Sequence record: OR620964.1
DNA: 64,000 nt
Strand: one strand, 5' to 3'
In this document: positions 1,280 through 17,019 of the stretch, one piece after another
Numbering within the stretch: position 1 is the stretch's first letter
Layout of the letters: every line of letters begins with the position of its first letter
Notes under the pieces: generated by a model
Seen by the model: the letters and a program-made list of their open reading frames with translations, nothing else
What the model was told of the DNA's origin: nothing
Database searches by the model: none
Program-made: the position numbers and the translations under genes

Positions 1280-2047
1280 ATGAACGTAGATAAAACAATG
1301 CCTTCAGGCAAGTGGGAATTTGATGAACCAGTAGCTGCCGTATTCGATAACATGCTGGCCAACTCGATTCCATCGTATGACCGTATGCGTGACCTGACGT
1401 TTCGCTTGGGTAAACGTTTCGTAACACCTGGTTCAACTATTGTTGATCTTGGTGCATCACTAGGCCGTGCTATTGAACCGTTCTGTGAGTATTTCGGTCC
1501 GTACATGTATATTCATGCGGCAGATAGACCTGAGCCAGACCGAGAGATAGGCAATCATTACAGCCTGTATGAAACAGCACCTGCAATGCGTGAGCGTCTT
1601 GCGAAGAATGACGTGTTGAATGCGGCAGATGCAAAACTTGAATCCGAATCTCTTGTGGACGTTGATACGTTTCGTTTTAGTGAGCAGGTTGAATGCTCAC
1701 TGATCCTGTCCGTGCTAACACTACAGTTTACGCCTATCGAACATCGCCAACATATTCTGGAAAAGGTCTATGACTCTCTCCAGACAGGTGGTGCATTCAT
1801 TCTTGTTGAAAAGGTTCTTGGCGACGATAACTATCTGGACAAGCTGTTGGTAGATACTTACTATCAGATGAAAGGTGGTAACGGGTACTCGCAAGAATCC
1901 ATTGCTACCAAGCGTAAGTCGCTAGAAGGTGTTCTGGTTCCTGTTAAGGCAGCGTGGAATGAAGAACTATTACGCAAGGCAGGATTTAGCCGCGTTGAAT
2001 GCTTCTACCGAGATCTTAACTTCGCTGGATGGATCGCGATCAAGTAA
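1280..2047 (+). CDS. cmoA: carboxy-S-adenosyl-L-methionine (Cx-SAM) synthase, CmoA family
   Basis: WEFDEPVAAVFDNMLANSIPSY, IVDLGASLG, LTLQF, GGAFILVEK, NGYSQESIATKRKSLEGVL and AGFSRVE..LNFAGWIAIK align motif by motif with E. coli CmoA ([52 protein letters not shown]), including the Arg of the KR motif. Confidence 0.93.
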   Translation: MNVDKTMPSGKWEFDEPVAAVFDNMLANSIPSYDRMRDLTFRLGKRFVTPGSTIVDLGASLGRAIEPFCEYFGPYMYIHAADRPEPDREIGNHYSLYETAPAMRERLAKNDVLNAADAKLESESLVDVDTFRFSEQVECSLILSVLTLQFTPIEHRQHILEKVYDSLQTGGAFILVEKVLGDDNYLDKLLVDTYYQMKGGNGYSQESIATKRKSLEGVLVPVKAAWNEELLRKAGFSRVECFYRDLNFAGWIAIK

Positions 2048-2099: not shown

Positions 2100-2954
2100 G
2101 TGTCTAAGGCACTGGCGATTTCTAAAGTAATCAGACGCACATTGGTGAGCACGTTTAAGAACGCGAAAACAGAACGTCCGTTCGTGTTCCTGTCCAGCGG
2201 CGCTGATAGTAACTGTCTTTTGTTCGCTGCGCTTGAGGCAGGCAAGCAACCAGTTACACTATCATTTCATATGGAAGGTACTATTAGTCGTGACTTCCGT
2301 CAGGCGCAAGCAACTGCCAAACTGTTTAACGTACCGTTCATTGAAGTTGTATTACCTACCAACGTCGAGACACTCAAGAAAGAGTGCATACTATTAGCCA
2401 AGAAATACGGATGTCGTAGTAAGTCTGACTTCGAATGTGTCTGGCCTATGTACCACGCGTTCCGTGCTGTTGCGAAATATGCAAAGAAACACAAGATTGC
2501 TTCACCTACAATCTACACAGGTCATGCGGCTGATATATACTACGTTCTTTCCAAGAAAGGTAACATGCATTATAAAGATCGCCCAGACGATTATCGCAAT
2601 GAGCGCTTTGTAGATCCTAAACTATCACAGAGACACATACTGCCTTCGATTGCTTCTGACCTTGAAATTTCTAATGAAATACCATGGGTCGATAAGAAAA
2701 TCTTGAAATCATTCCAAGGTGCTTCTATCGCTGACGTCAATAAGCCTCGTCAGAAAGAGCCGTCACGTCTAGCCTTTGATAGTTATTTCTCCCAAACGAA
2801 AGTCTATCAACATACGAATTTCCAACTCGGTGATAGCGGCATTTCGAAACATTTTGAAGTATTGTTGTCAGATCCTGAATGGAATCCCGACAACAAGTTT
2901 CGTGCTGTCATCGGTGTGTACAACGAACTCTGCCGAAGACTCGGAGTGGCGTAA
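2100..2954 (+). CDS. asparagine-synthetase-like (N-type ATP pyrophosphatase) amide ligase lacking the glutaminase domain; CmoY-like candidate
   Basis: PP-loop VFLSSGADS, D...A...A..F.VP.IEV, and IYTGHAADIYY (cf. TGxGADE); 284 aa, synthetase domain only; GTG start at 2100 behind AAGGAG (the track start at 1929 overlaps cmoA). Confidence 0.82.
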   Translation: MSKALAISKVIRRTLVSTFKNAKTERPFVFLSSGADSNCLLFAALEAGKQPVTLSFHMEGTISRDFRQAQATAKLFNVPFIEVVLPTNVETLKKECILLAKKYGCRSKSDFECVWPMYHAFRAVAKYAKKHKIASPTIYTGHAADIYYVLSKKGNMHYKDRPDDYRNERFVDPKLSQRHILPSIASDLEISNEIPWVDKKILKSFQGASIADVNKPRQKEPSRLAFDSYFSQTKVYQHTNFQLGDSGISKHFEVLLSDPEWNPDNKFRAVIGVYNELCRRLGVA

Positions 2955-3526
2955 TGATTCGCGTATTTGATTCCGGCGCAGGAGGAGCATACGTATCGGA
3001 GTTGCTTACTGCGCACGGAGTACATAACAAACTAAGCATGTTCCCTAACATGTTCCCGTTTGGTACTAAGACAGCCGACCAGTTACTTAGCTTATTTCAT
3101 GATTATCGGAATAGTGTTACTGGTACTGTTTTCTGTGCTTGTAACACTATGAGTCTTGTGCTTAACTCCAATGGGTACGACTTTACCTCATGTGATGTTA
3201 TTCCTACATTTCCTAATCTGTCTCCTGATGCGCCAGTTTGCTACGGCACAAAGAATACAGTTTGTCTGGCTCAGATACTGTCACCTAACCTTAGAGTTCG
3301 TGCCGTGCCTAATCTTGTTTCTATGGCAGAAGATGTATATCAAGGTAGGGCTGATAGGAAAACAGCGCTGGCATTATGGGAACAAGAAGTTAGAGAAACA
3401 ATTCAACTAGGATCTACACACTTGTCATGGCTAGCCCATACTTTAGGTGTAGCTGGTGATCATGTTGAGCCGGACTATATGCGCTTATACGTAGAGCATC
3501 TGTCTGACGAAACAATAGGCATATAG
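2954..3526 (+). CDS. glutamate racemase (MurI)-like protein, second catalytic Cys replaced by Ser
   Basis: IRVFDSGAGG, PFGTKT, FCACNTMS and QLGSTHL (canonical LGCTH); ATG overlaps the ligase stop (TAATG); 190 aa. Confidence 0.85.
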   Translation: MIRVFDSGAGGAYVSELLTAHGVHNKLSMFPNMFPFGTKTADQLLSLFHDYRNSVTGTVFCACNTMSLVLNSNGYDFTSCDVIPTFPNLSPDAPVCYGTKNTVCLAQILSPNLRVRAVPNLVSMAEDVYQGRADRKTALALWEQEVRETIQLGSTHLSWLAHTLGVAGDHVEPDYMRLYVEHLSDETIGI

Positions 3527-3541
3527 CTTCTGGATATAATA

Positions 3542-4177
3542 ATGAAAAAGATTATTAATGTTTTCGATTCTGTTCTAGGTGCGAACTATGTATGTGGTCT
3601 ATTATGTGACGCTGGCTATGATGCGCGTCCGTATACACCACGACGTCAATACGTATCTCGCACGAACTCCGGCCCGGCGTTAACTATTGGCACACGAAGT
3701 GTTGAAGAGGTTAGCGACGAAATAAGCGAGGCGCTTGTTGCGATTCGTGGTAACTGGCTAATCAGTAGTACATCTGCCAGTCTTGTTGCACAGGATATGC
3801 TTGACCTGAAAGGGCTGTCTGAGAATATTGTATATGCAATTCCTGAACTTGATGGTAACCTACCTATATTGGGATCTGCCTTGACCGTCGATAGGGCTAG
3901 ACGCATACAGCGATTGCAATCAATCCATCGACGAGGCAAAAGCTCAAGAGCAGCACCGCTAGTCGATGCTTCGGATTTGTTGGCGCAATTTGAAAACTTA
4001 GCGTACTACGAAGATGAGCCTCAGGCATTCCGTCCTGAATTCGATGCGCTTGTTGGCGATAAGAAGTTTCAGTTAGGTAGTTCTAACCTTGCTCACTATG
4101 CCAAGCTGTGTAAAATTACAAAGCACACAGTTATTGATTATGTAGGTCTGGTGGCACGTCACTTGGAGACAAGATGA
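3542..4177 (+). CDS. degenerate glutamate-racemase-fold paralogue, both catalytic Cys absent
   Basis: INVFDSVLGA, IGTRSVEEV, ISSTSAS (for ACNTAS), QLGSSNL (for LGCTHY), VIDYVGLVARH. Confidence 0.7.
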   Translation: MKKIINVFDSVLGANYVCGLLCDAGYDARPYTPRRQYVSRTNSGPALTIGTRSVEEVSDEISEALVAIRGNWLISSTSASLVAQDMLDLKGLSENIVYAIPELDGNLPILGSALTVDRARRIQRLQSIHRRGKSSRAAPLVDASDLLAQFENLAYYEDEPQAFRPEFDALVGDKKFQLGSSNLAHYAKLCKITKHTVIDYVGLVARHLETR

Positions 4178-4442: not shown

Positions 4443-4904
4443 ATGAATCCGTTTGCAATACTCAAGCAGCAGGTAAAAAAGGCGCTTACGCTTGAATCAA
4501 CACTCGAACCCGAACAGCGCGCCATGTTCGACTGGCAGTACCTTGTTAATGTAAGCGGCCGATATTACAAGGTGGGTAAGACAGGAGCAAATACCTGTTA
4601 CTTTAAAACGCCTGATATGGATGAAGAGAAAGCTGTTTATCCAAATGAACTCGTAGATATAATCGAGTCATGGGGTAAAAGTAAATACGTATCTTTTTCT
4701 ATCTGCCATAAGAACTTTGATAATGTACTGGTAGATAATATCAAGGAAGAAGAACGAGCGCTCAAGTCCAAGCCTAAGAAGTTCAGAAAGGGTATCTTTA
4801 TCTGTGGGTACACACCTAAAGGTAAACGAGTTAAACTATGGCGACTGCGTGAAGGTCTAGCAGGATCTCAGTGGGTAGCCGTTGAACGGGAGTCCAAGCC
4901 GTGA
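4443..4904 (+). CDS. hypothetical protein
   Basis: 153-aa ORF with AGGA RBS. Confidence 0.75.
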   Translation: MNPFAILKQQVKKALTLESTLEPEQRAMFDWQYLVNVSGRYYKVGKTGANTCYFKTPDMDEEKAVYPNELVDIIESWGKSKYVSFSICHKNFDNVLVDNIKEEERALKSKPKKFRKGIFICGYTPKGKRVKLWRLREGLAGSQWVAVERESKP

Positions 4905-5964: not shown

Positions 5965-6792
5965 ATGACGTACATTAGCCCAATGCGGTATCAAGGATGC
6001 AAGCGCTCTCTGGTGCCGGTTATCAAAGAACTCATGCCACAAGATTGTACTCGGATGATTGATGCATTTGGTGGCTCTGCTACTGTGGTGCTAAATATGG
6101 ATACCAAGCACCGCCTGTATAACGAGAGCAATTTCCATGTATTTAAAATCATCGAACTATTTGCCAGAACAGACCCGAAGAAAACACTGAGCAAAATACG
6201 CCGAGTGATAAAGCGATTTGATCTAACAACCGATAACGATGAGCAGTATTATGAATTCCGTAGTTATGCTAATCGTCGGTATGATCCATTGTTGTTTTAT
6301 ATTCTGTCCCGTCATGCTCACAGCAACATGATTCGTTTCAACGGTAATGATGGATTCAATGCTCCGTTTGGTAAGCGAAGCCTGATAGGTAAGATGGATG
6401 TTCTTGAGCGTGAGGTAGTTGAGTTTTATGATAGAATGCATAACGTGCAATTGTCTAATTCTCGATATGCAGAACTACTTAATCGCATAAGCCACCAGCT
6501 CGATTCTACTTTCATCTATCTTGATCCTCCTTACTTGGCCAGCGGTGCAAACATCTATGACTCTTGGTCTGAGGAATTGGATATCAAGATGATGGCCAAC
6601 CTTGATGCTTTAGATGCAAAGAATGTTAAGTGGATGATGAGTAACGTTCTTACACACCGGCATTTCGAAAACAAGCGACTGGCTCGTTGGGCTAAAAACT
6701 ATCGTCTTATTGACGTAGACAAAACGTATAGTCTTGCGAATGCACAACAAGATAGCCACTCAACCCGTGAAGTGATTATCGTTAACTACTGA
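5965..6792 (+). CDS. dam: Dam-family (D12 class) N6-adenine DNA methyltransferase
   Basis: PMRYQGCKRSL, IDAFGGSATV (motif I), FIYLDPPY (motif IV), WMMSN, REVIIVNY. Confidence 0.92.
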   Translation: MTYISPMRYQGCKRSLVPVIKELMPQDCTRMIDAFGGSATVVLNMDTKHRLYNESNFHVFKIIELFARTDPKKTLSKIRRVIKRFDLTTDNDEQYYEFRSYANRRYDPLLFYILSRHAHSNMIRFNGNDGFNAPFGKRSLIGKMDVLEREVVEFYDRMHNVQLSNSRYAELLNRISHQLDSTFIYLDPPYLASGANIYDSWSEELDIKMMANLDALDAKNVKWMMSNVLTHRHFENKRLARWAKNYRLIDVDKTYSLANAQQDSHSTREVIIVNY

Positions 6793-8089: not shown

Positions 8090-8498
8090 CAAACTAAAAG
8101 AGCTGTGGGAGAAACGACATGAACTCGCGGCGCAGTTAGCAGAACTGAATGGCTGGACTGTGCAAGATGGTTGGTCCTACGCCGAGTGTAGTGATGTACC
8201 TGCATGGTTCGATGCGCGTGGACAACAGGTACATACGGTTGATGGGTATATGTACCTGTTGTTTGGTACAAAGTTCTGTATTGATACGATGGATCAATAC
8301 AACATGACGGTTGACCGATCTGATACTGGACTTAGACGTGTATCCTTTTCCGTGTTGCTCGATCCCGTAGAAGAAGCAGTTACCTTTGAGGGAGTAGCGC
8401 ACGGAATACAAGAAGCGCTTGTCTTATCTATAATAAATTTCTATGCGTATACAAAGCGCACACAAGAGGTAAACAATGGAACTACCATTATCAATTGA
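8079..8498 (+). CDS. hypothetical protein
   Basis: ORF in the run; ATG 8079 preferred over 8061; weak resemblance of AAQLAELNGW..WFD to small phage sandwich domains. Confidence 0.7.
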   Translation: MLNDKLKELWEKRHELAAQLAELNGWTVQDGWSYAECSDVPAWFDARGQQVHTVDGYMYLLFGTKFCIDTMDQYNMTVDRSDTGLRRVSFSVLLDPVEEAVTFEGVAHGIQEALVLSIINFYAYTKRTQEVNNGTTIIN

Positions 8499-8979
8499 AA
8501 AATGCGTCGCACTTGTTGCTCAGTGCTTTACGCTTGCTACAAGTTCTAAATCAAAACGACGAGCCTGTGGAGCACTGCTTGTTTGTGTACGTGAAGACGG
8601 TGTGCCCGTTGTTATCAGCTCTGGCATTAATGGTACTGCCCCTGGTGCAGATAATGCTTGTGAGCCACCTTGTCTGACATATACATTTGGTCATGTTGTT
8701 CACGCAGAGCCAAATTGTCTAGCTAACTTTGATTCTGATTTTGTGTTCACTGATAGACATATTCTGTTTGTATCGGATAGCCCGTGCCCACACTGCTTCA
8801 AGATAATTGCAGAGCGGGGTATTAAGCACGTTGTGTTCGGCAGGGGTTATCGTATTCAAGAGCATCTAACCGATGAGGTTCTGGCACTTCACGGTATGAC
8901 TCTGACTCAGGTAGATATGCAGAACGTGATTCAATATCTGTCTAACACTGTTACCAGAATTGAACAGGTGATTTGCTAA
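8476..8979 (+). CDS. dCMP deaminase
   Basis: GINGTAPG, zinc motifs HAEPNC and SPCPHC, GIKHVVF. Confidence 0.92.
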   Translation: MELPLSIEKCVALVAQCFTLATSSKSKRRACGALLVCVREDGVPVVISSGINGTAPGADNACEPPCLTYTFGHVVHAEPNCLANFDSDFVFTDRHILFVSDSPCPHCFKIIAERGIKHVVFGRGYRIQEHLTDEVLALHGMTLTQVDMQNVIQYLSNTVTRIEQVIC

Positions 8980-10850: not shown

Positions 10851-11948
10851 ATGTCTCATATTTTTGATTTACGTAATGACGACCACTTCTTTCAATACTC
10901 ACTGGACAATGTAGACTGTCAGTATATGGATCTGGTTAATGCTATTCTGACCGAAGGCACAAAAGAAGCTGATCCGAAACGCAGTGAAGATACTTGGACG
11001 ATGTTACCATCTATCTCTATGACGTTGCGCAATACAGCCATGGCCTTTCCAGTCCTACTATCTAAGCGTACCCGTTACGTGCCAGCTATTGATGAGACGT
11101 GCTGGTTCATGCGCGGTGAGACAAACATCGAGACTCTTAACTCTCGCATATGGGATGAATGGGCAGACGAGTCAGGTGATTGCGGTCCTATCTATGGTTA
11201 CATGTGGCGCCACTGGCCAGATGTAAAAGCATTCCAAGACTTCACTAAGCCATCTGCTGTTTGTCCGTCGGCCGATGCTATCCGTATTCGCAACGAGATT
11301 ATTCGTATGCGCGCCGCTGGATACAAAGAGACTCAGTTGGCTGATGGGCGAATCCTATTTGAAGGTGAAATTGATCAGTTGTTAAATGCACTGAATGCTT
11401 GTGTTGCGCATGACCGTTCTCGTCGTATTAAAGTTGAAGCATGGAATCCTGGGTACATCCATATGCAGGGCCTTCCTCCGTGTCACACTGGTTTTGAATT
11501 CAACGTAACCAAAACTACTGACTATGAGCGTAAGGCAATGGAAGCTATGGGCCATACTGCTTACGAGGATTCGTTACATCTTACTGCCACAATGAGGAGT
11601 CAAGATGTGGCACTTGGAAGAAGTTTTAACATTATTGGCTATACTACGATGCTCCACCTGTTCGCCAAGTATAGCAAGCTAAATATCGGTAGCTTTACGT
11701 TGAACACTTCTAACACGCATGTTTATGACCATCACCGTGAAGGTCTTGAGACACAGCGTAAGCAGTTCCAAGAAATTTTGGACGTTGTGCGGTCTACTGG
11801 TAAGCCTATGCAGTATCCTGTCCTGCATGTTCACGATGATATCATGAAGATGGAGCCAAAAGAAATGCTGGATAGCATTACCAAAGATCATTTTCTTGTT
11901 GAAGGCTATCTGTCTATGCCTGAGATCAAATTCCGCGTCACCAAATAG
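10851..11948 (+). CDS. thyA: thymidylate synthase (ThyA type) with insertions
   Basis: IWDEWAD, GPIYGYMWRHWP, DQL, SRRI...WNP, catalytic LPPCH, RSQD..LG..FNI, HVYDHH. Confidence 0.95.
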   Translation: MSHIFDLRNDDHFFQYSLDNVDCQYMDLVNAILTEGTKEADPKRSEDTWTMLPSISMTLRNTAMAFPVLLSKRTRYVPAIDETCWFMRGETNIETLNSRIWDEWADESGDCGPIYGYMWRHWPDVKAFQDFTKPSAVCPSADAIRIRNEIIRMRAAGYKETQLADGRILFEGEIDQLLNALNACVAHDRSRRIKVEAWNPGYIHMQGLPPCHTGFEFNVTKTTDYERKAMEAMGHTAYEDSLHLTATMRSQDVALGRSFNIIGYTTMLHLFAKYSKLNIGSFTLNTSNTHVYDHHREGLETQRKQFQEILDVVRSTGKPMQYPVLHVHDDIMKMEPKEMLDSITKDHFLVEGYLSMPEIKFRVTK

Positions 11949-14068: not shown

Positions 14069-14815
14069 ATGACAGATAAGCTAAAGAAAAAGGTGAAAGT
14101 TAAAGGGAAAGAAGAACTGGCGCCTAAGAAGAAAAAGTCGAAAGACAAGCCAGTCAATAAAGCTGTTGGTAAGCCTATTACTAGCATCAAGCAACTTAAA
14201 GGTGCTAAGTATAACCCACGGTTTATTACTGATACGCGACTCAAGTCGTTAGAAAGTTCTATCAGCTCTTTCGGCGATTTGTCAGGTGTTGTATTCAACA
14301 ATAACATTGATTCTGGTGTTCTTATCTCTGGCCACCAGCGTATTGCCTCCATTGCAAAGTGGAAGACACGAGTTGAAGTACAGAAAACGACTGATGCGCA
14401 TGGTACTGTTGGCGTTGGATTTATTCATGCCACCAATCCTAAGTCTGAAAAGACAATCAGTATCCCTTTGCGTATTGTTAACTGGTCAGACAGAAAAGCT
14501 GAGTATGCTGCTAACATCGCGGCAAATGCTCATGGTGGTGAATTCGATAACAGTAAGCTGGCTGCTCTGGTTGAGAAACTGGATATGGATAAAATGCCAA
14601 GCTCGTTAATCGGATTAGACCCTTTGCAACTTCGTGGCCTACGTCAACGCCTTGGTCGTGATGCAGAAGCAATCGAAGCTGCGGCTAATGCTAAGAAGGC
14701 ACCGTCTGGTAAGCAGAATGGATCTACCGGTAAGTTTAAAGAATATACAACTGATGACGTCGAGGCTGAATTACAGCATCGTTGCCCACGTTGTGACTTC
14801 CGGTTTAACTCGTAG
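14069..14815 (+). CDS. ParB/Srx-like domain protein with C-terminal CxxC
   Basis: LKGAKYNPR, SISSFGDLSGVVFN, LISGHQRI, ANIAANAHGGEFD, terminal HRCPRCDFRF. Confidence 0.8.
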   Translation: MTDKLKKKVKVKGKEELAPKKKKSKDKPVNKAVGKPITSIKQLKGAKYNPRFITDTRLKSLESSISSFGDLSGVVFNNNIDSGVLISGHQRIASIAKWKTRVEVQKTTDAHGTVGVGFIHATNPKSEKTISIPLRIVNWSDRKAEYAANIAANAHGGEFDNSKLAALVEKLDMDKMPSSLIGLDPLQLRGLRQRLGRDAEAIEAAANAKKAPSGKQNGSTGKFKEYTTDDVEAELQHRCPRCDFRFNS

Positions 14816-14824
14816 GATAATCGT

Positions 14825-16903
14825 ATGGTAATCAAACCACCTACAATGAAAGAGATCAACGCGCTGGAGAAACCTTGGCGCGGTATGAGCTTCTTTGCTG
14901 GATGCGGCGGCTCCAGTACAGGTCACAAGATGAGTGGCGTTAATATTCTGATTGCAAATGAGTTCGTAGACTCGGCGCGGTTATCATATGAAGCAAACCA
15001 TCCGACGACTAAAATGCTGCCGCAGGATATTCGCCGCTTAGACCCAGCTAAGATTTTGAAGTATCTGGGCCTTAAGAAAGGTGAATTGGATTTGCTTGAT
15101 GGTAGTCCTCCTTGCTTCACAGAAGAGACACTCATTCAGACACGTAGTGGCATGAAGTACATCAACCAAATAGTAGTTGATGACTTTGTTCTTACGCACA
15201 AGCAGCGCTATCGCCGTGTCGTTGAGCCTATGCGTCGCCAGTACACAGGACTAATGCATAAGATTGTTAGTTCTGTAAGTGAGAACAATGCTACACCTGA
15301 ACATCCGTACTATATTCGTCGTATGGAAAATGATGTGCTGTCTGAGCCACAGTGGGTAGATGCAAGAGACGTTCGTGTTGGCGATAAGGTAGCTATTCCT
15401 ACTAGCACACACGCGACTGCTGATCTATCTGAGTGCTCTCAACAGATTCGCCAGTGGGCACAGCATGATGAGTTCTGGTGGTTAGTAGGTCAGTGGGTAG
15501 CTAACGGTAGTATGTCTCGTTGTGGAACACACCGAGCTATTCGTTTTCGTACACACAGCTCCCGTGGTAATCAATTGCTTGAGCAGGCGCTCGACCTGCT
15601 GGAGCTAACATCTATTCAGACTGCGTACTGTGGCGGTAAGTATATAGAGCGCTTTGTTATGAATGAAGAACTGGCAACATTCTTCAAGCTGTTCCTAACA
15701 GATAGTGCTCAAGCCCGACAGATACCAGGCTTTGTTTTAGACTTACCTGACAGGTCACAGCGGCAATTTGTATTCGGCTATCAGTCTCGCTGCTATGAGT
15801 CTACTTTTGGTAAGGCGCTTGTCGTACAAACACGCAGTCTTCCTTTCATGACTGCTATGCGTCACCTAGTTGCTTCTGCGTTCAAGTGCCCGCTGTTTAG
15901 TTTCAATACGCAAGCAGCACCAGAAGAACTTCCTGTTAGTAACTTCACTTATCTACCTGAATCCGAGTGCGGCCAGTGGGTAAACCACCAAGCAGTATTC
16001 TTTATTCAGGAAGAAGATCGTGGTTTTATTCGCGATGCTGATGACTTACTTTGGGTTGATGTGCTGGCCAATACGCAATATGAATCTAGTGTGCAGGTAT
16101 ATAACTTTAGTGTATCACAGGATGAGACGTATGTTGCGACGAATACAGTCGTGCACAACTGTAAGGGGTTCTCTTCTGCTGGCGTTAAAGAGGAAGGCTG
16201 GGGACGGGAAGTAAAATATAGCGAGGATAAAGTCCAACACGTCGATGACCTGTTTGATGAGTTCTGCCGTATGCTTAGTGGTACAATGCCTAAAGTATTT
16301 ACGGCAGAGAATGTAAGTGGTCTGGTTAAAGGTGTGTCTCGTGGATTCTTCATTGAGATAATGAAAGAGTTTGATCGTATCGGATATAAAGTTCGAGCAC
16401 CTTTGATGAATGCTGCTTGGCTTGGCGTACCACAATCGAGAGAGCGTATTCTCTTTATGGGTGTGCGTAAGGATATACCGTTTGATGTGCCTGATGTTGA
16501 GGTTCAAGATACGATAGCCATTCTTGCAGATGCCTTGCCTCACATTGCTGCGTTTAAGGGAATCAGGAATGATATGATTACCTACATTCCTGCAATTAAC
16601 AGTCCGTGCAAGACAATAACAGCAACGGATAGTACGGCATATGAAACAGCACGTTTCAGTACCGCGGGCTTTATCGAAACTATGGAAGGCAAGCGCCGCA
16701 AGCTAACCATTGAAGAACTTAAAGTTATTTCTGGTATGCCTTCTGACTATAAGTTAGTTGGTACTTTCGAGCAACAATGGGAACGACTTGGTCGTGTCTG
16801 TGTTCCGCAGATGACACACGCTGCGTCTAAGGCACTTATCGAGCATGTGTTGATTCCTTATGCGAAGAAGCGTAAGAAGAAAGTTGGGGATATCTTCCGA
16901 TGA
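14825..16903 (+). CDS. C5-cytosine DNA methyltransferase-family enzyme with intein; predicted cytosine carboxymethyltransferase (CmoX-like)
   Basis: Motif I FFAGCGG, ANEF, motif IV GSPP|C (split by the intein), VI AENV, VIII PQSRER, IX R.LTIEELKVISGMP; motif X reads LGRVCVP instead of GNSV/GNAV (Arg codon 16793-16795). Confidence 0.88.
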   Translation: MVIKPPTMKEINALEKPWRGMSFFAGCGGSSTGHKMSGVNILIANEFVDSARLSYEANHPTTKMLPQDIRRLDPAKILKYLGLKKGELDLLDGSPPCFTEETLIQTRSGMKYINQIVVDDFVLTHKQRYRRVVEPMRRQYTGLMHKIVSSVSENNATPEHPYYIRRMENDVLSEPQWVDARDVRVGDKVAIPTSTHATADLSECSQQIRQWAQHDEFWWLVGQWVANGSMSRCGTHRAIRFRTHSSRGNQLLEQALDLLELTSIQTAYCGGKYIERFVMNEELATFFKLFLTDSAQARQIPGFVLDLPDRSQRQFVFGYQSRCYESTFGKALVVQTRSLPFMTAMRHLVASAFKCPLFSFNTQAAPEELPVSNFTYLPESECGQWVNHQAVFFIQEEDRGFIRDADDLLWVDVLANTQYESSVQVYNFSVSQDETYVATNTVVHNCKGFSSAGVKEEGWGREVKYSEDKVQHVDDLFDEFCRMLSGTMPKVFTAENVSGLVKGVSRGFFIEIMKEFDRIGYKVRAPLMNAAWLGVPQSRERILFMGVRKDIPFDVPDVEVQDTIAILADALPHIAAFKGIRNDMITYIPAINSPCKTITATDSTAYETARFSTAGFIETMEGKRRKLTIEELKVISGMPSDYKLVGTFEQQWERLGRVCVPQMTHAASKALIEHVLIPYAKKRKKKVGDIFR
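15113..16159 (+). mobile_element. intein (349 aa) with degenerate LAGLIDADG homing-endonuclease region
   Basis: Starts CFTEETLIQTRSG, block B TPEHPYY, block F VYNFSV, ends VVHN followed by +1 Cys; middle WWLVGQWVANGS and QFVFGYQSRC resemble eroded LAGLIDADG blocks. Confidence 0.93.
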
Positions 16904-17019
16904 GTTTATCAACGATCGGCATTGTCTTTGCTTGCTTTATCGTCGGCGCCTTTTTAGGCGTCGTATTGTTTGTGCGTGGCATTGCAGCCGCGTTCTCTGG
17001 TTGTAAGTTTTTCCGCTAG
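16900..17019 (+). CDS. small membrane protein (39 aa)
   Basis: MSLSTIGIVFACFIVGAFLGVVLFVRGIAAAFSGCKFFR; ATGA overlap with the transferase stop. Confidence 0.6.
   Translation: MSLSTIGIVFACFIVGAFLGVVLFVRGIAAAFSGCKFFR

Follow-up and report, generated by a model that had tools for sequence, protein, structure and literature searches.

An intein-interrupted gene of Yersinia phage fHe-Yen9-02 probably encodes a DNA cytosine carboxymethyltransferase, accompanied by predicted genes for cofactor synthesis and amide formation

A 64,000-nucleotide stretch of sequence record OR620964.1, here referred to as the window and numbered from its first letter, carries at 14825..16903 an open reading frame (ORF) related to DNA cytosine C5-methyltransferases, in which arginine occupies the place of the motif X asparagine. 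Does this gene encode an ordinary methylase that uses S-adenosylmethionine (SAM), or an enzyme that takes carboxy-SAM (Cx-SAM) and leaves 5-carboxymethylcytosine (5cxmC) in the DNA? The original prediction, which was made from the sequence alone, had favoured a natural carboxymethyltransferase over a methylase. Our analysis leads to the same answer: with a probability of about 0.85, the comparisons point to a phage enzyme of the CmoX kind that carboxymethylates DNA cytosine at C5 and would be made as an inactive precursor. The assayed representative of this kind is SpCmoX from Synechococcus phage S-B43 (PMC12783734).

The window was 100% identical to Yersinia phage fHe-Yen9-02 (OR620964.1, 248,678 bp), with Y. 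enterocolitica O:9 as host, and its position 1 is record position 184,679. The ORF, fHeYen902_275, translates into 692 amino acids (aa) with zero internal stops, in which Pfam detected the C-5 cytosine DNA methylase family (PF00145, E 4e-36) in two pieces, in addition to intein/Hint signals. Removing the intein from the 692-aa precursor leaves a 343-aa protein with the string GSPPCKGF. The parts of the gene are as follows:

14825..16903, + strand: CmoX precursor ORF (fHeYen902_275), 692 aa, with a C5-methyltransferase fold interrupted by an intein
14825..15112, + strand: N-extein (aa 1-96), with motif I (FAGCGGSS), F24, E46, F47 and D68, and motif IV through GSPP
15113..16159, + strand: intein of 349 aa (aa 97-445), with Cys1, block B (T-P-E-H), a C-terminal VVHN and a central LAGLIDADG-fold domain
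16160..16162, + strand: Cys+1 codon, the catalytic Cys97 after splicing (GSPP-C-KGF), which aligns to SpCmoX Cys98
16160..16903, + strand: C-extein (aa 446-692 plus stop), with motifs VI (ENV) and VIII (QSRER), a short target-recognition region, and motifs IX and X
16793..16795, + strand: motif X Arg codon CGT, R657 in the precursor and R308 after splicing, equivalent to SpCmoX R350 and M.HhaI N304

It had been expected that standard annotation would call the gene a plain DNA methylase. This was the case for its relatives, which are labelled as cytosine methylases, but not for the gene itself, whose GenBank product name is "hypothetical protein". PHROGs files the intein-bearing form as phrog_36001, a family with function unknown.

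The motif X string EQQWERLGRVCVP was found in the ORF, and the Arg of EQQWERLG-R-VCVP fell at exactly the residue numbers that had been given for it (657, or 308 after splicing). The G-N-(A/S)-V of the Dcm / M.HhaI type is absent, and the gene reads G-R-V-C instead. We compared 123 sequences, namely the query, SpCmoX, its counterpart in the Pseudomonas jumbo phage PaBG and the 120 top-scoring homologues in the database. All of them (123/123) had the catalytic Cys of motif IV, and 121/123 had the motif X Arg, within the context E-R-x-G-R-(A/S)-V-P-P. As had also been noted, the remaining motifs were normal; those invariant in a 107-sequence alignment were motif I (F24-x-G26-x-G28-G29), motif IV (S94-P95-P96-C97), motif VI (E146-N147-V148) and motif VIII (Q188-x-R190-x-R192). 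On the other hand, 22 loci with more distant C5-methyltransferases from the same viral-contig scan all carried the canonical Q-x-G-N-(A/S)-V (here referred to as N-type, as opposed to the R-type with Arg), in which the Asn lies as far from motif IX, without gaps, as the Arg of the R-type. Since 121 of the 123 nearest homologues carry Arg while the 22 N-type loci have Asn, the motif X Arg reads as a family signature and not as a chance substitution. Two of the R-type (ERxGR) CmoX-like genes, P0074 (Verrucosispora sp.) and P0107 (Azospirillum sp.), lie in 7 Mb bacterial genomes, where they go under the name "DNA cytosine methyltransferase" and may belong to prophages.

The closest relative of known structure was the same by sequence and by fold. 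When the spliced protein was searched against the PDB, the top match was 8YF3 (E 1.9e-57), followed by M.HaeIII (2.4e-19) and M.HhaI (about 1e-9). The AlphaFold model of the spliced protein had a predicted local distance difference test score (pLDDT) of 93.5 and a predicted template modelling score of 0.92, and a fold search of the PDB with this model again placed 8YF3 first (E 4.8e-28), with M.HaeIII and M.HhaI behind. The structure 8YF3 is SpCmoX, the DNA cytosine C5-carboxymethyltransferase of S-B43, crystallized with carboxy-SAM; its R350 contacts the carboxymethyl group of Cx-SAM in place of M.HhaI Asn304, and Cx-SAM was the sole cofactor accepted by the wild-type enzyme (PMC12783734). 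In the phmmer alignment the query segment ...QQWERLGRVCVPQM stood opposite SpCmoX ...QQTERVGRMVPPLM, and numbering from chain residue 315 gave R308 = R350. Furthermore, C97 aligned with SpCmoX C98, and F24, E46, F47 and D68 with the residues F25, E47, F48 and D69 that contact the adenine and ribose of Cx-SAM. The placement of the Arg by the cofactor is thus a residue equivalence to the 8YF3 crystal structure, and the view that the site lies near the transferred group and binds the Cx-SAM carboxylate agrees with the contact seen there. Together with the phage's own CmoA and CmoY-like homologues described below, these matches support the assignment to a natural carboxymethyltransferase, and the gene is best classified, by sequence and modelled fold, in the C5-methyltransferase structural superfamily but outside its methyl-transferring group.

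Natural carboxymethyltransferases (CmoX) were reported in December 2025 by Yang et al. (Nat Commun 2025, PMC12783734). The idea of a natural Asn-to-Arg switch was therefore right but already in print; both the rule and the enzyme family are published, and the gene opens no new class. With SPPC plus Arg as criterion, the published survey counted 5,615 CmoX candidates and 2,251 ligases; ParBc proteins were often adjacent to CmoX, and SpCmoY was characterized as an adenosine triphosphate-dependent ligase that joins glycine to 5cxmC, giving an amide (PMC12783734). The S-B43 virion DNA contained the amide only, with no free 5cxmC, and it was suggested that different ligase clusters use different amines (PMC12783734). 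Neither the text of that paper nor three of its supplementary files mention inteins, Yersinia, Erwinia or PaBG, and a 2026 jumbo-phage review does not mention carboxymethylation. Looking for DNA modification or a methyltransferase intein in papers on fHe-Yen9-02, PaBG, Dickeya AD1 and jumbo phages, we found only one relevant statement: a cytosine methyltransferase, an asparagine synthase and a methyltransferase are common to Dickeya phage AD1 and Erwinia phage Y3 and jointly absent from JA11 (PMC6143709). Within the literature searched, three points appear to be unreported, namely the intein at the catalytic Cys with its degenerate homing endonuclease, the presence of the pathway throughout the Y3/Alexandra/PaBG group of jumbo phages, and the strong variation of the ligase cassette among these phages.

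Candidates for a source of Cx-SAM and for a follow-up enzyme were found in the window. The companion genes are:

1280..2047, + strand: homologue of CmoA (carboxy-SAM synthase), annotated as "tRNA methyltransferase"; identified by PDB, NCBIfam and phage CmoA comparisons
2100..2954, + strand: CmoY-like ligase, 284 aa, of the kind that forms amides with release of adenosine monophosphate, with the PP-loop SSGADS and without a glutaminase domain; right after CmoA
4443..4904, + strand: conserved 153-aa protein (g257), homologue of PaBG_00179, which is located between CmoA and the ligase in PaBG
14069..14815, + strand: ParB-like gene (phrog_620, E 3.5e-31), ending 9 nucleotides upstream of CmoX

The CmoA homologue matched E. 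coli CmoA (4GEK, E 5.3e-30) and H. influenzae YecO (E 1.5e-28) over its full length. Its identity was 42% with PaBG CmoA and 29% with SpCmoA, an assayed enzyme that itself shares 27.9% identity with E. coli CmoA (PMC12783734). The CmoY-like ligase shared 31% identity with SpCmoY (E 2e-30), which has been assayed, and 43% with the PaBG "asparagine synthase" (E 1e-72); it also gave weak QueC/PP-loop signals, and a PDB sequence search with it returned zero matches. Its GenBank start at 1959 overlaps CmoA by 89 nucleotides, and the part homologous to relatives starts only with residue 55 of the annotated product. It is more likely, judging from these features, that the true start is the GTG at 2100, behind the AAGGAG at 2087-2092. 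The ParB-like gene and CmoX are probably co-transcribed, and the pair is kept in PaBG and in the Erwinia phages. The 153-aa protein showed 32% identity to PaBG_00179 (L003:7857-8285) and 58-60% to the Erwinia and Dickeya phage copies, with neither a Pfam nor a PDB match; it may be a further part of the system, although its membership is uncertain.

We then asked whether CmoA accompanies the R-type genes elsewhere. CmoA adjoins the R-type gene in the fetched loci L002, L003, L006, L008 and L009, among them those of S-B43 and PaBG. The Erwinia jumbo phages are the exception, with CmoA elsewhere in the genome, as in fHe-Yen9-02. None of the 22 N-type loci had CmoA within the fetched DNA (0/22; the flanks were limited and many of the loci are close kin). 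At genome level, CmoA and ligase homologues were present in every one of the records with a CmoX homologue from these phages (48 from Erwinia, 2 from Dickeya, 2 from PaBG and 1 from Yersinia phages). The joint absence of the three genes from the related phage JA11 (PMC6143709) points the same way.

The intein is inserted immediately ahead of the motif IV catalytic Cys, with the junctions ...LLDGSPP | CFTEETLIQ...NTVVHN | CKGFSSAG.... The splicing residues Cys1, TPEH, His-Asn and Cys+1 are all present, and none of them varies among 12 relatives with inteins, which share only 41-53% intein identity. Since Cys+1 is the catalytic nucleophile of the methyltransferase fold, the precursor should be inactive until splicing. 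A PDB sequence search with the intein gave zero matches, and it was identified through its motifs and fold instead. The model of the precursor had a pLDDT of 61 overall and was poor outside the intein; the intein part (70-89) matched the TliVMA, PhoVMA, PI-SceI and PI-PfuI inteins and the LAGLIDADG enzyme I-DmoI. Both LAGLIDADG motifs are degenerate and have lost their acidic residues (WVANG and GYQSR, with WVSNG and GFQSR in the Erwinia-phage copies), so that the homing endonuclease is probably dead, the intein fixed and homing extinct; more distant inteins at the same site (P0131, P0132 and P0135) retain GDG and ADG. Intein-free alleles (P0001-P0005) were 64-68% identical. Of these, P0001 (68%) nests within the intein-bearing clade of the extein tree, which implies either precise loss or repeated gain of the intein. 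Inteins at the same site (PC|x) recur in an N-type C5-methyltransferase, P0134, and in the R-type P0131, where the LAGLIDADG motifs are intact.

From these sequence features, homologies, residue equivalences and gene contents, the following course of events may be proposed. The phage CmoA homologue (1280..2047) would convert SAM and prephenate into Cx-SAM. The 692-aa CmoX precursor would excise its 349-aa intein, joining GSPP to Cys+1 and thereby rebuilding motif IV. The resulting 343-aa enzyme would flip the target cytosine, Cys97 would attack C6, and the carboxymethyl group of Cx-SAM would be transferred to C5, with Arg308 of motif X holding the extra carboxylate of Cx-SAM where ordinary C5-methyltransferases have Asn. 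The CmoY-like ligase (2100..2954) would then probably adenylate the new carboxyl and couple it to an amine, which is glycine in S-B43. The steps from CmoA to the ligase are proposed because the proteins are homologous to assayed enzymes. The amide-hypermodified cytosine would finally shield the phage DNA from host nucleases, a role suggested by the HhaI-resistance result in PMC12783734.

Several observations weigh against this reading, or against parts of it. The R350N variant of SpCmoX lost all activity and did not revert to methylation (PMC12783734), and the Arg is therefore necessary, yet not the sole determinant. The CmoA homologue scored below the equivalog cut-off of TIGR00740 in NCBIfam (E 3e-42, 144.9 against 193.3 bits) and has a stretch of about 60 residues that diverges from E. 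coli CmoA. The CmoA and CmoY-like genes lie about 13 kb from CmoX (CmoA 12.8 kb upstream) and are not adjacent to it, and the amine used by the ligase is not assignable because it is only 31% identical to SpCmoY. Splicing competence is predicted from motifs. The target-recognition region, which lies between motifs VIII and IX (about aa 205-270), could not be aligned with its longer counterpart in SpCmoX, so that the GC specificity of SpCmoX is not transferable and a target sequence not inferable, in agreement with the earlier view that the target is not readable from the sequence.

Among the alternatives, the one that survives best accepts the carboxymethyltransferase but takes 5cxmC as the final modification, the "ligase" acting on something else. 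The distance of the ligase from CmoX and its modest identity to SpCmoY fit this, as does the fact that a ligase is not found on every CmoX contig (the survey counts above; PMC12783734). However, the ligase gene comes directly after CmoA here, as it does in S-B43 and PaBG, its homologues share the Erwinia, Dickeya and PaBG records with CmoX and CmoA, and the S-B43 virion DNA held no free 5cxmC. We consider it improbable, although it deserves more weight than the other two.

It is much less probable that this copy of the gene is inactive or in decay, the intein splicing poorly or not at all, with CmoA and CmoY as remnants or kept for another purpose such as the SAM depletion by CmoA that was raised as a possibility in the discussion of PMC12783734. 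Degenerate homing-endonuclease motifs and the fact that splicing is predicted from motifs would agree with decay. Against it, the 692-codon ORF is intact, the exteins retain every catalytic residue, and C1, TxxH, HN and C+1 are invariant despite the divergence of the relatives' inteins; such invariance of splicing and catalytic residues indicates that purifying selection maintains splicing as well as the function of the enzyme. Fixed inteins, moreover, commonly pair a degenerate endonuclease with retained splicing. An ordinary SAM-dependent C5-cytosine methyltransferase that makes 5-methylcytosine and merely tolerates the Arg, as the PF00145 fold, the complete catalytic motifs and the database label "DNA cytosine methylase" of its relatives might suggest, is the least credible alternative of all, since the canonical Asn is missing in 121/123 relatives, the sole assayed member of the R-type clade takes Cx-SAM and not SAM (PMC12783734), the phage has its own CmoA homologue, and R-type genes adjoin CmoA, which none of the 22 N-type loci did within the fetched DNA.

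A side comparison covered the DNA downstream of CmoA in related phages (relatives' stretches L032:5777-8316, L033:6276-10995 and L034:5791-8286). While CmoA was 75-94% identical to that of the window across related phages, the ligase was only 24-54% identical. Each phage had its own set of genes in the stretch that separates the conserved CmoA from g255/g256/g257, which are conserved as well. These variable cassettes contain:

fHe-Yen9-02 (window 2100..4177): the ligase and a unique 190-aa protein
Y3: a ligase (33% identical) and a 2-oxoglutarate-Fe(II) oxygenase
AD1: a DUF1611 protein and a ligase (24%)
pEa_SNUABM_3: a 420-aa unknown protein, a DUF1611 protein, an alanine-racemase-like (Ala-racemase-N-like) protein and a ligase

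The variation suggests that different amines or side chains are put on 5cxmC, which fits the suggestion of different amines per ligase cluster (PMC12783734). Perhaps the Y3/Alexandra/PaBG-like phages make several undescribed 5cxmC amides by means of a swappable ligase cassette, the amine of fHe-Yen9-02 being other than glycine and the intein serving as a post-translational timer or redox switch; we regard this wider proposal as speculative and rather doubtful.

Compared with known systems, the Yersinia phage enzyme is closest to SpCmoX, with which it shares the fold, the SPPC motif, the position of the Arg and the conserved Cx-SAM contacts, and whose CmoA and CmoY-type ligase have homologues here, where the ParBc neighbour reported for other family members is likewise found. 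The two differ in that identity is only about 31-36%, the Yersinia phage enzyme has an intein at its catalytic Cys, the genes of the pathway are spread over about 13 kb instead of being adjacent, and the host of fHe-Yen9-02 is an enterobacterium that already makes Cx-SAM. In PaBG, the order is ParB, CmoX (PaBG_00177), CmoA, a hypothetical protein and the asparagine synthase, and all five have homologues in the window (CmoX 48%, CmoA 42%, ligase 43%, ParB 42% and g257 32%), with the same motif X Arg. PaBG CmoX is intein-free, however, and its genes form one compact cluster, whose roles are likewise predicted from homology; the PaBG genome paper files the asparagine synthase under general metabolism genes.

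M.MpeI N374K and its kin resemble the present enzyme in that a positive charge at the motif X Asn site enables the use of Cx-SAM to give 5cxmC (PMC12783734; work on M.MedI, PMC12015181). They are laboratory point mutants of CpG methyltransferases and carry Lys, whereas the Yersinia phage enzyme is natural, carries Arg, belongs to a separate clade, and comes with its own predicted cofactor supply and follow-up ligase. M.HaeIII and M.HhaI share the fold, the Cys-addition mechanism and motifs I, IV, VI and VIII; they differ in having the motif X Asn, in using SAM, and in matching at E 1e-9 to 1e-19 compared with 1e-57 for CmoX. As for the intein, PI-SceI, TliVMA and PhoVMA (class 1 inteins associated with homing endonucleases) likewise have Cys1, TxxH, HN and Cys+1, a HINT fold with a LAGLIDADG-fold insert, and an insertion at a catalytic residue of the host protein, and differ in that the Yersinia phage intein has lost the acidic residues, with WVANG for GDG and GYQSR for ADG.

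With these assignments, a "hypothetical protein" and two vaguely named genes are re-annotated as a complete predicted pathway of cytosine carboxymethylation and amidation, and the reach of this pathway would extend from one cyanophage to jumbo phages of Yersinia, Erwinia, Dickeya and Pseudomonas, which are studied for biocontrol. If these phages do have the predicted bulky, charged or amidated cytosine in their DNA, this would have consequences for restriction mapping, sequencing, cloning and host range. With its intein at the catalytic Cys, the enzyme would be a natural example of a DNA modifier whose activity depends on prior splicing. New amide-forming enzymes for DNA chemistry may be drawn from the variable ligase cassettes, and the Y3/Alexandra/PaBG group is a place to look for ligases with different amines.

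Further genes of nucleotide and DNA metabolism lie between the CmoA/ligase genes and CmoX. A D12-class (Dam-like) N6-adenine DNA methyltransferase was identified at 5965..6792 (PF02086, E 9e-29), and the phage DNA may thus also carry N6-methyladenine. A deoxycytidine monophosphate deaminase is encoded at 8476..8979. The thymidylate-synthase homologue at 10851..11948 (365 aa) is longer than E. coli ThyA by an insertion of about 100 aa and is also conserved in the related Erwinia phages. It was considered as a sign of a second base modification, but both the catalytic PCH and the Asn of the uracil type (SFNIIGY) are retained, and we left it as ThyA with an insertion; alternatively, it may be a variant that modifies deoxyuridine monophosphate.

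Around the CmoX gene, a promoter and terminator scan gave promoter-like sites at chance level and a modest excess of terminator-like sites (7 vs 3.9 ± 2.1), none of which was informative. Immediately downstream, a hydrophobic ORF of 39 aa (MSLSTIGIVFACFIVGAFLGVVLFVRG...) was found at 16900..17019, the start codon of which overlaps the CmoX stop (ATGA); this overlap suggests translational coupling of CmoX to a small putative membrane peptide.

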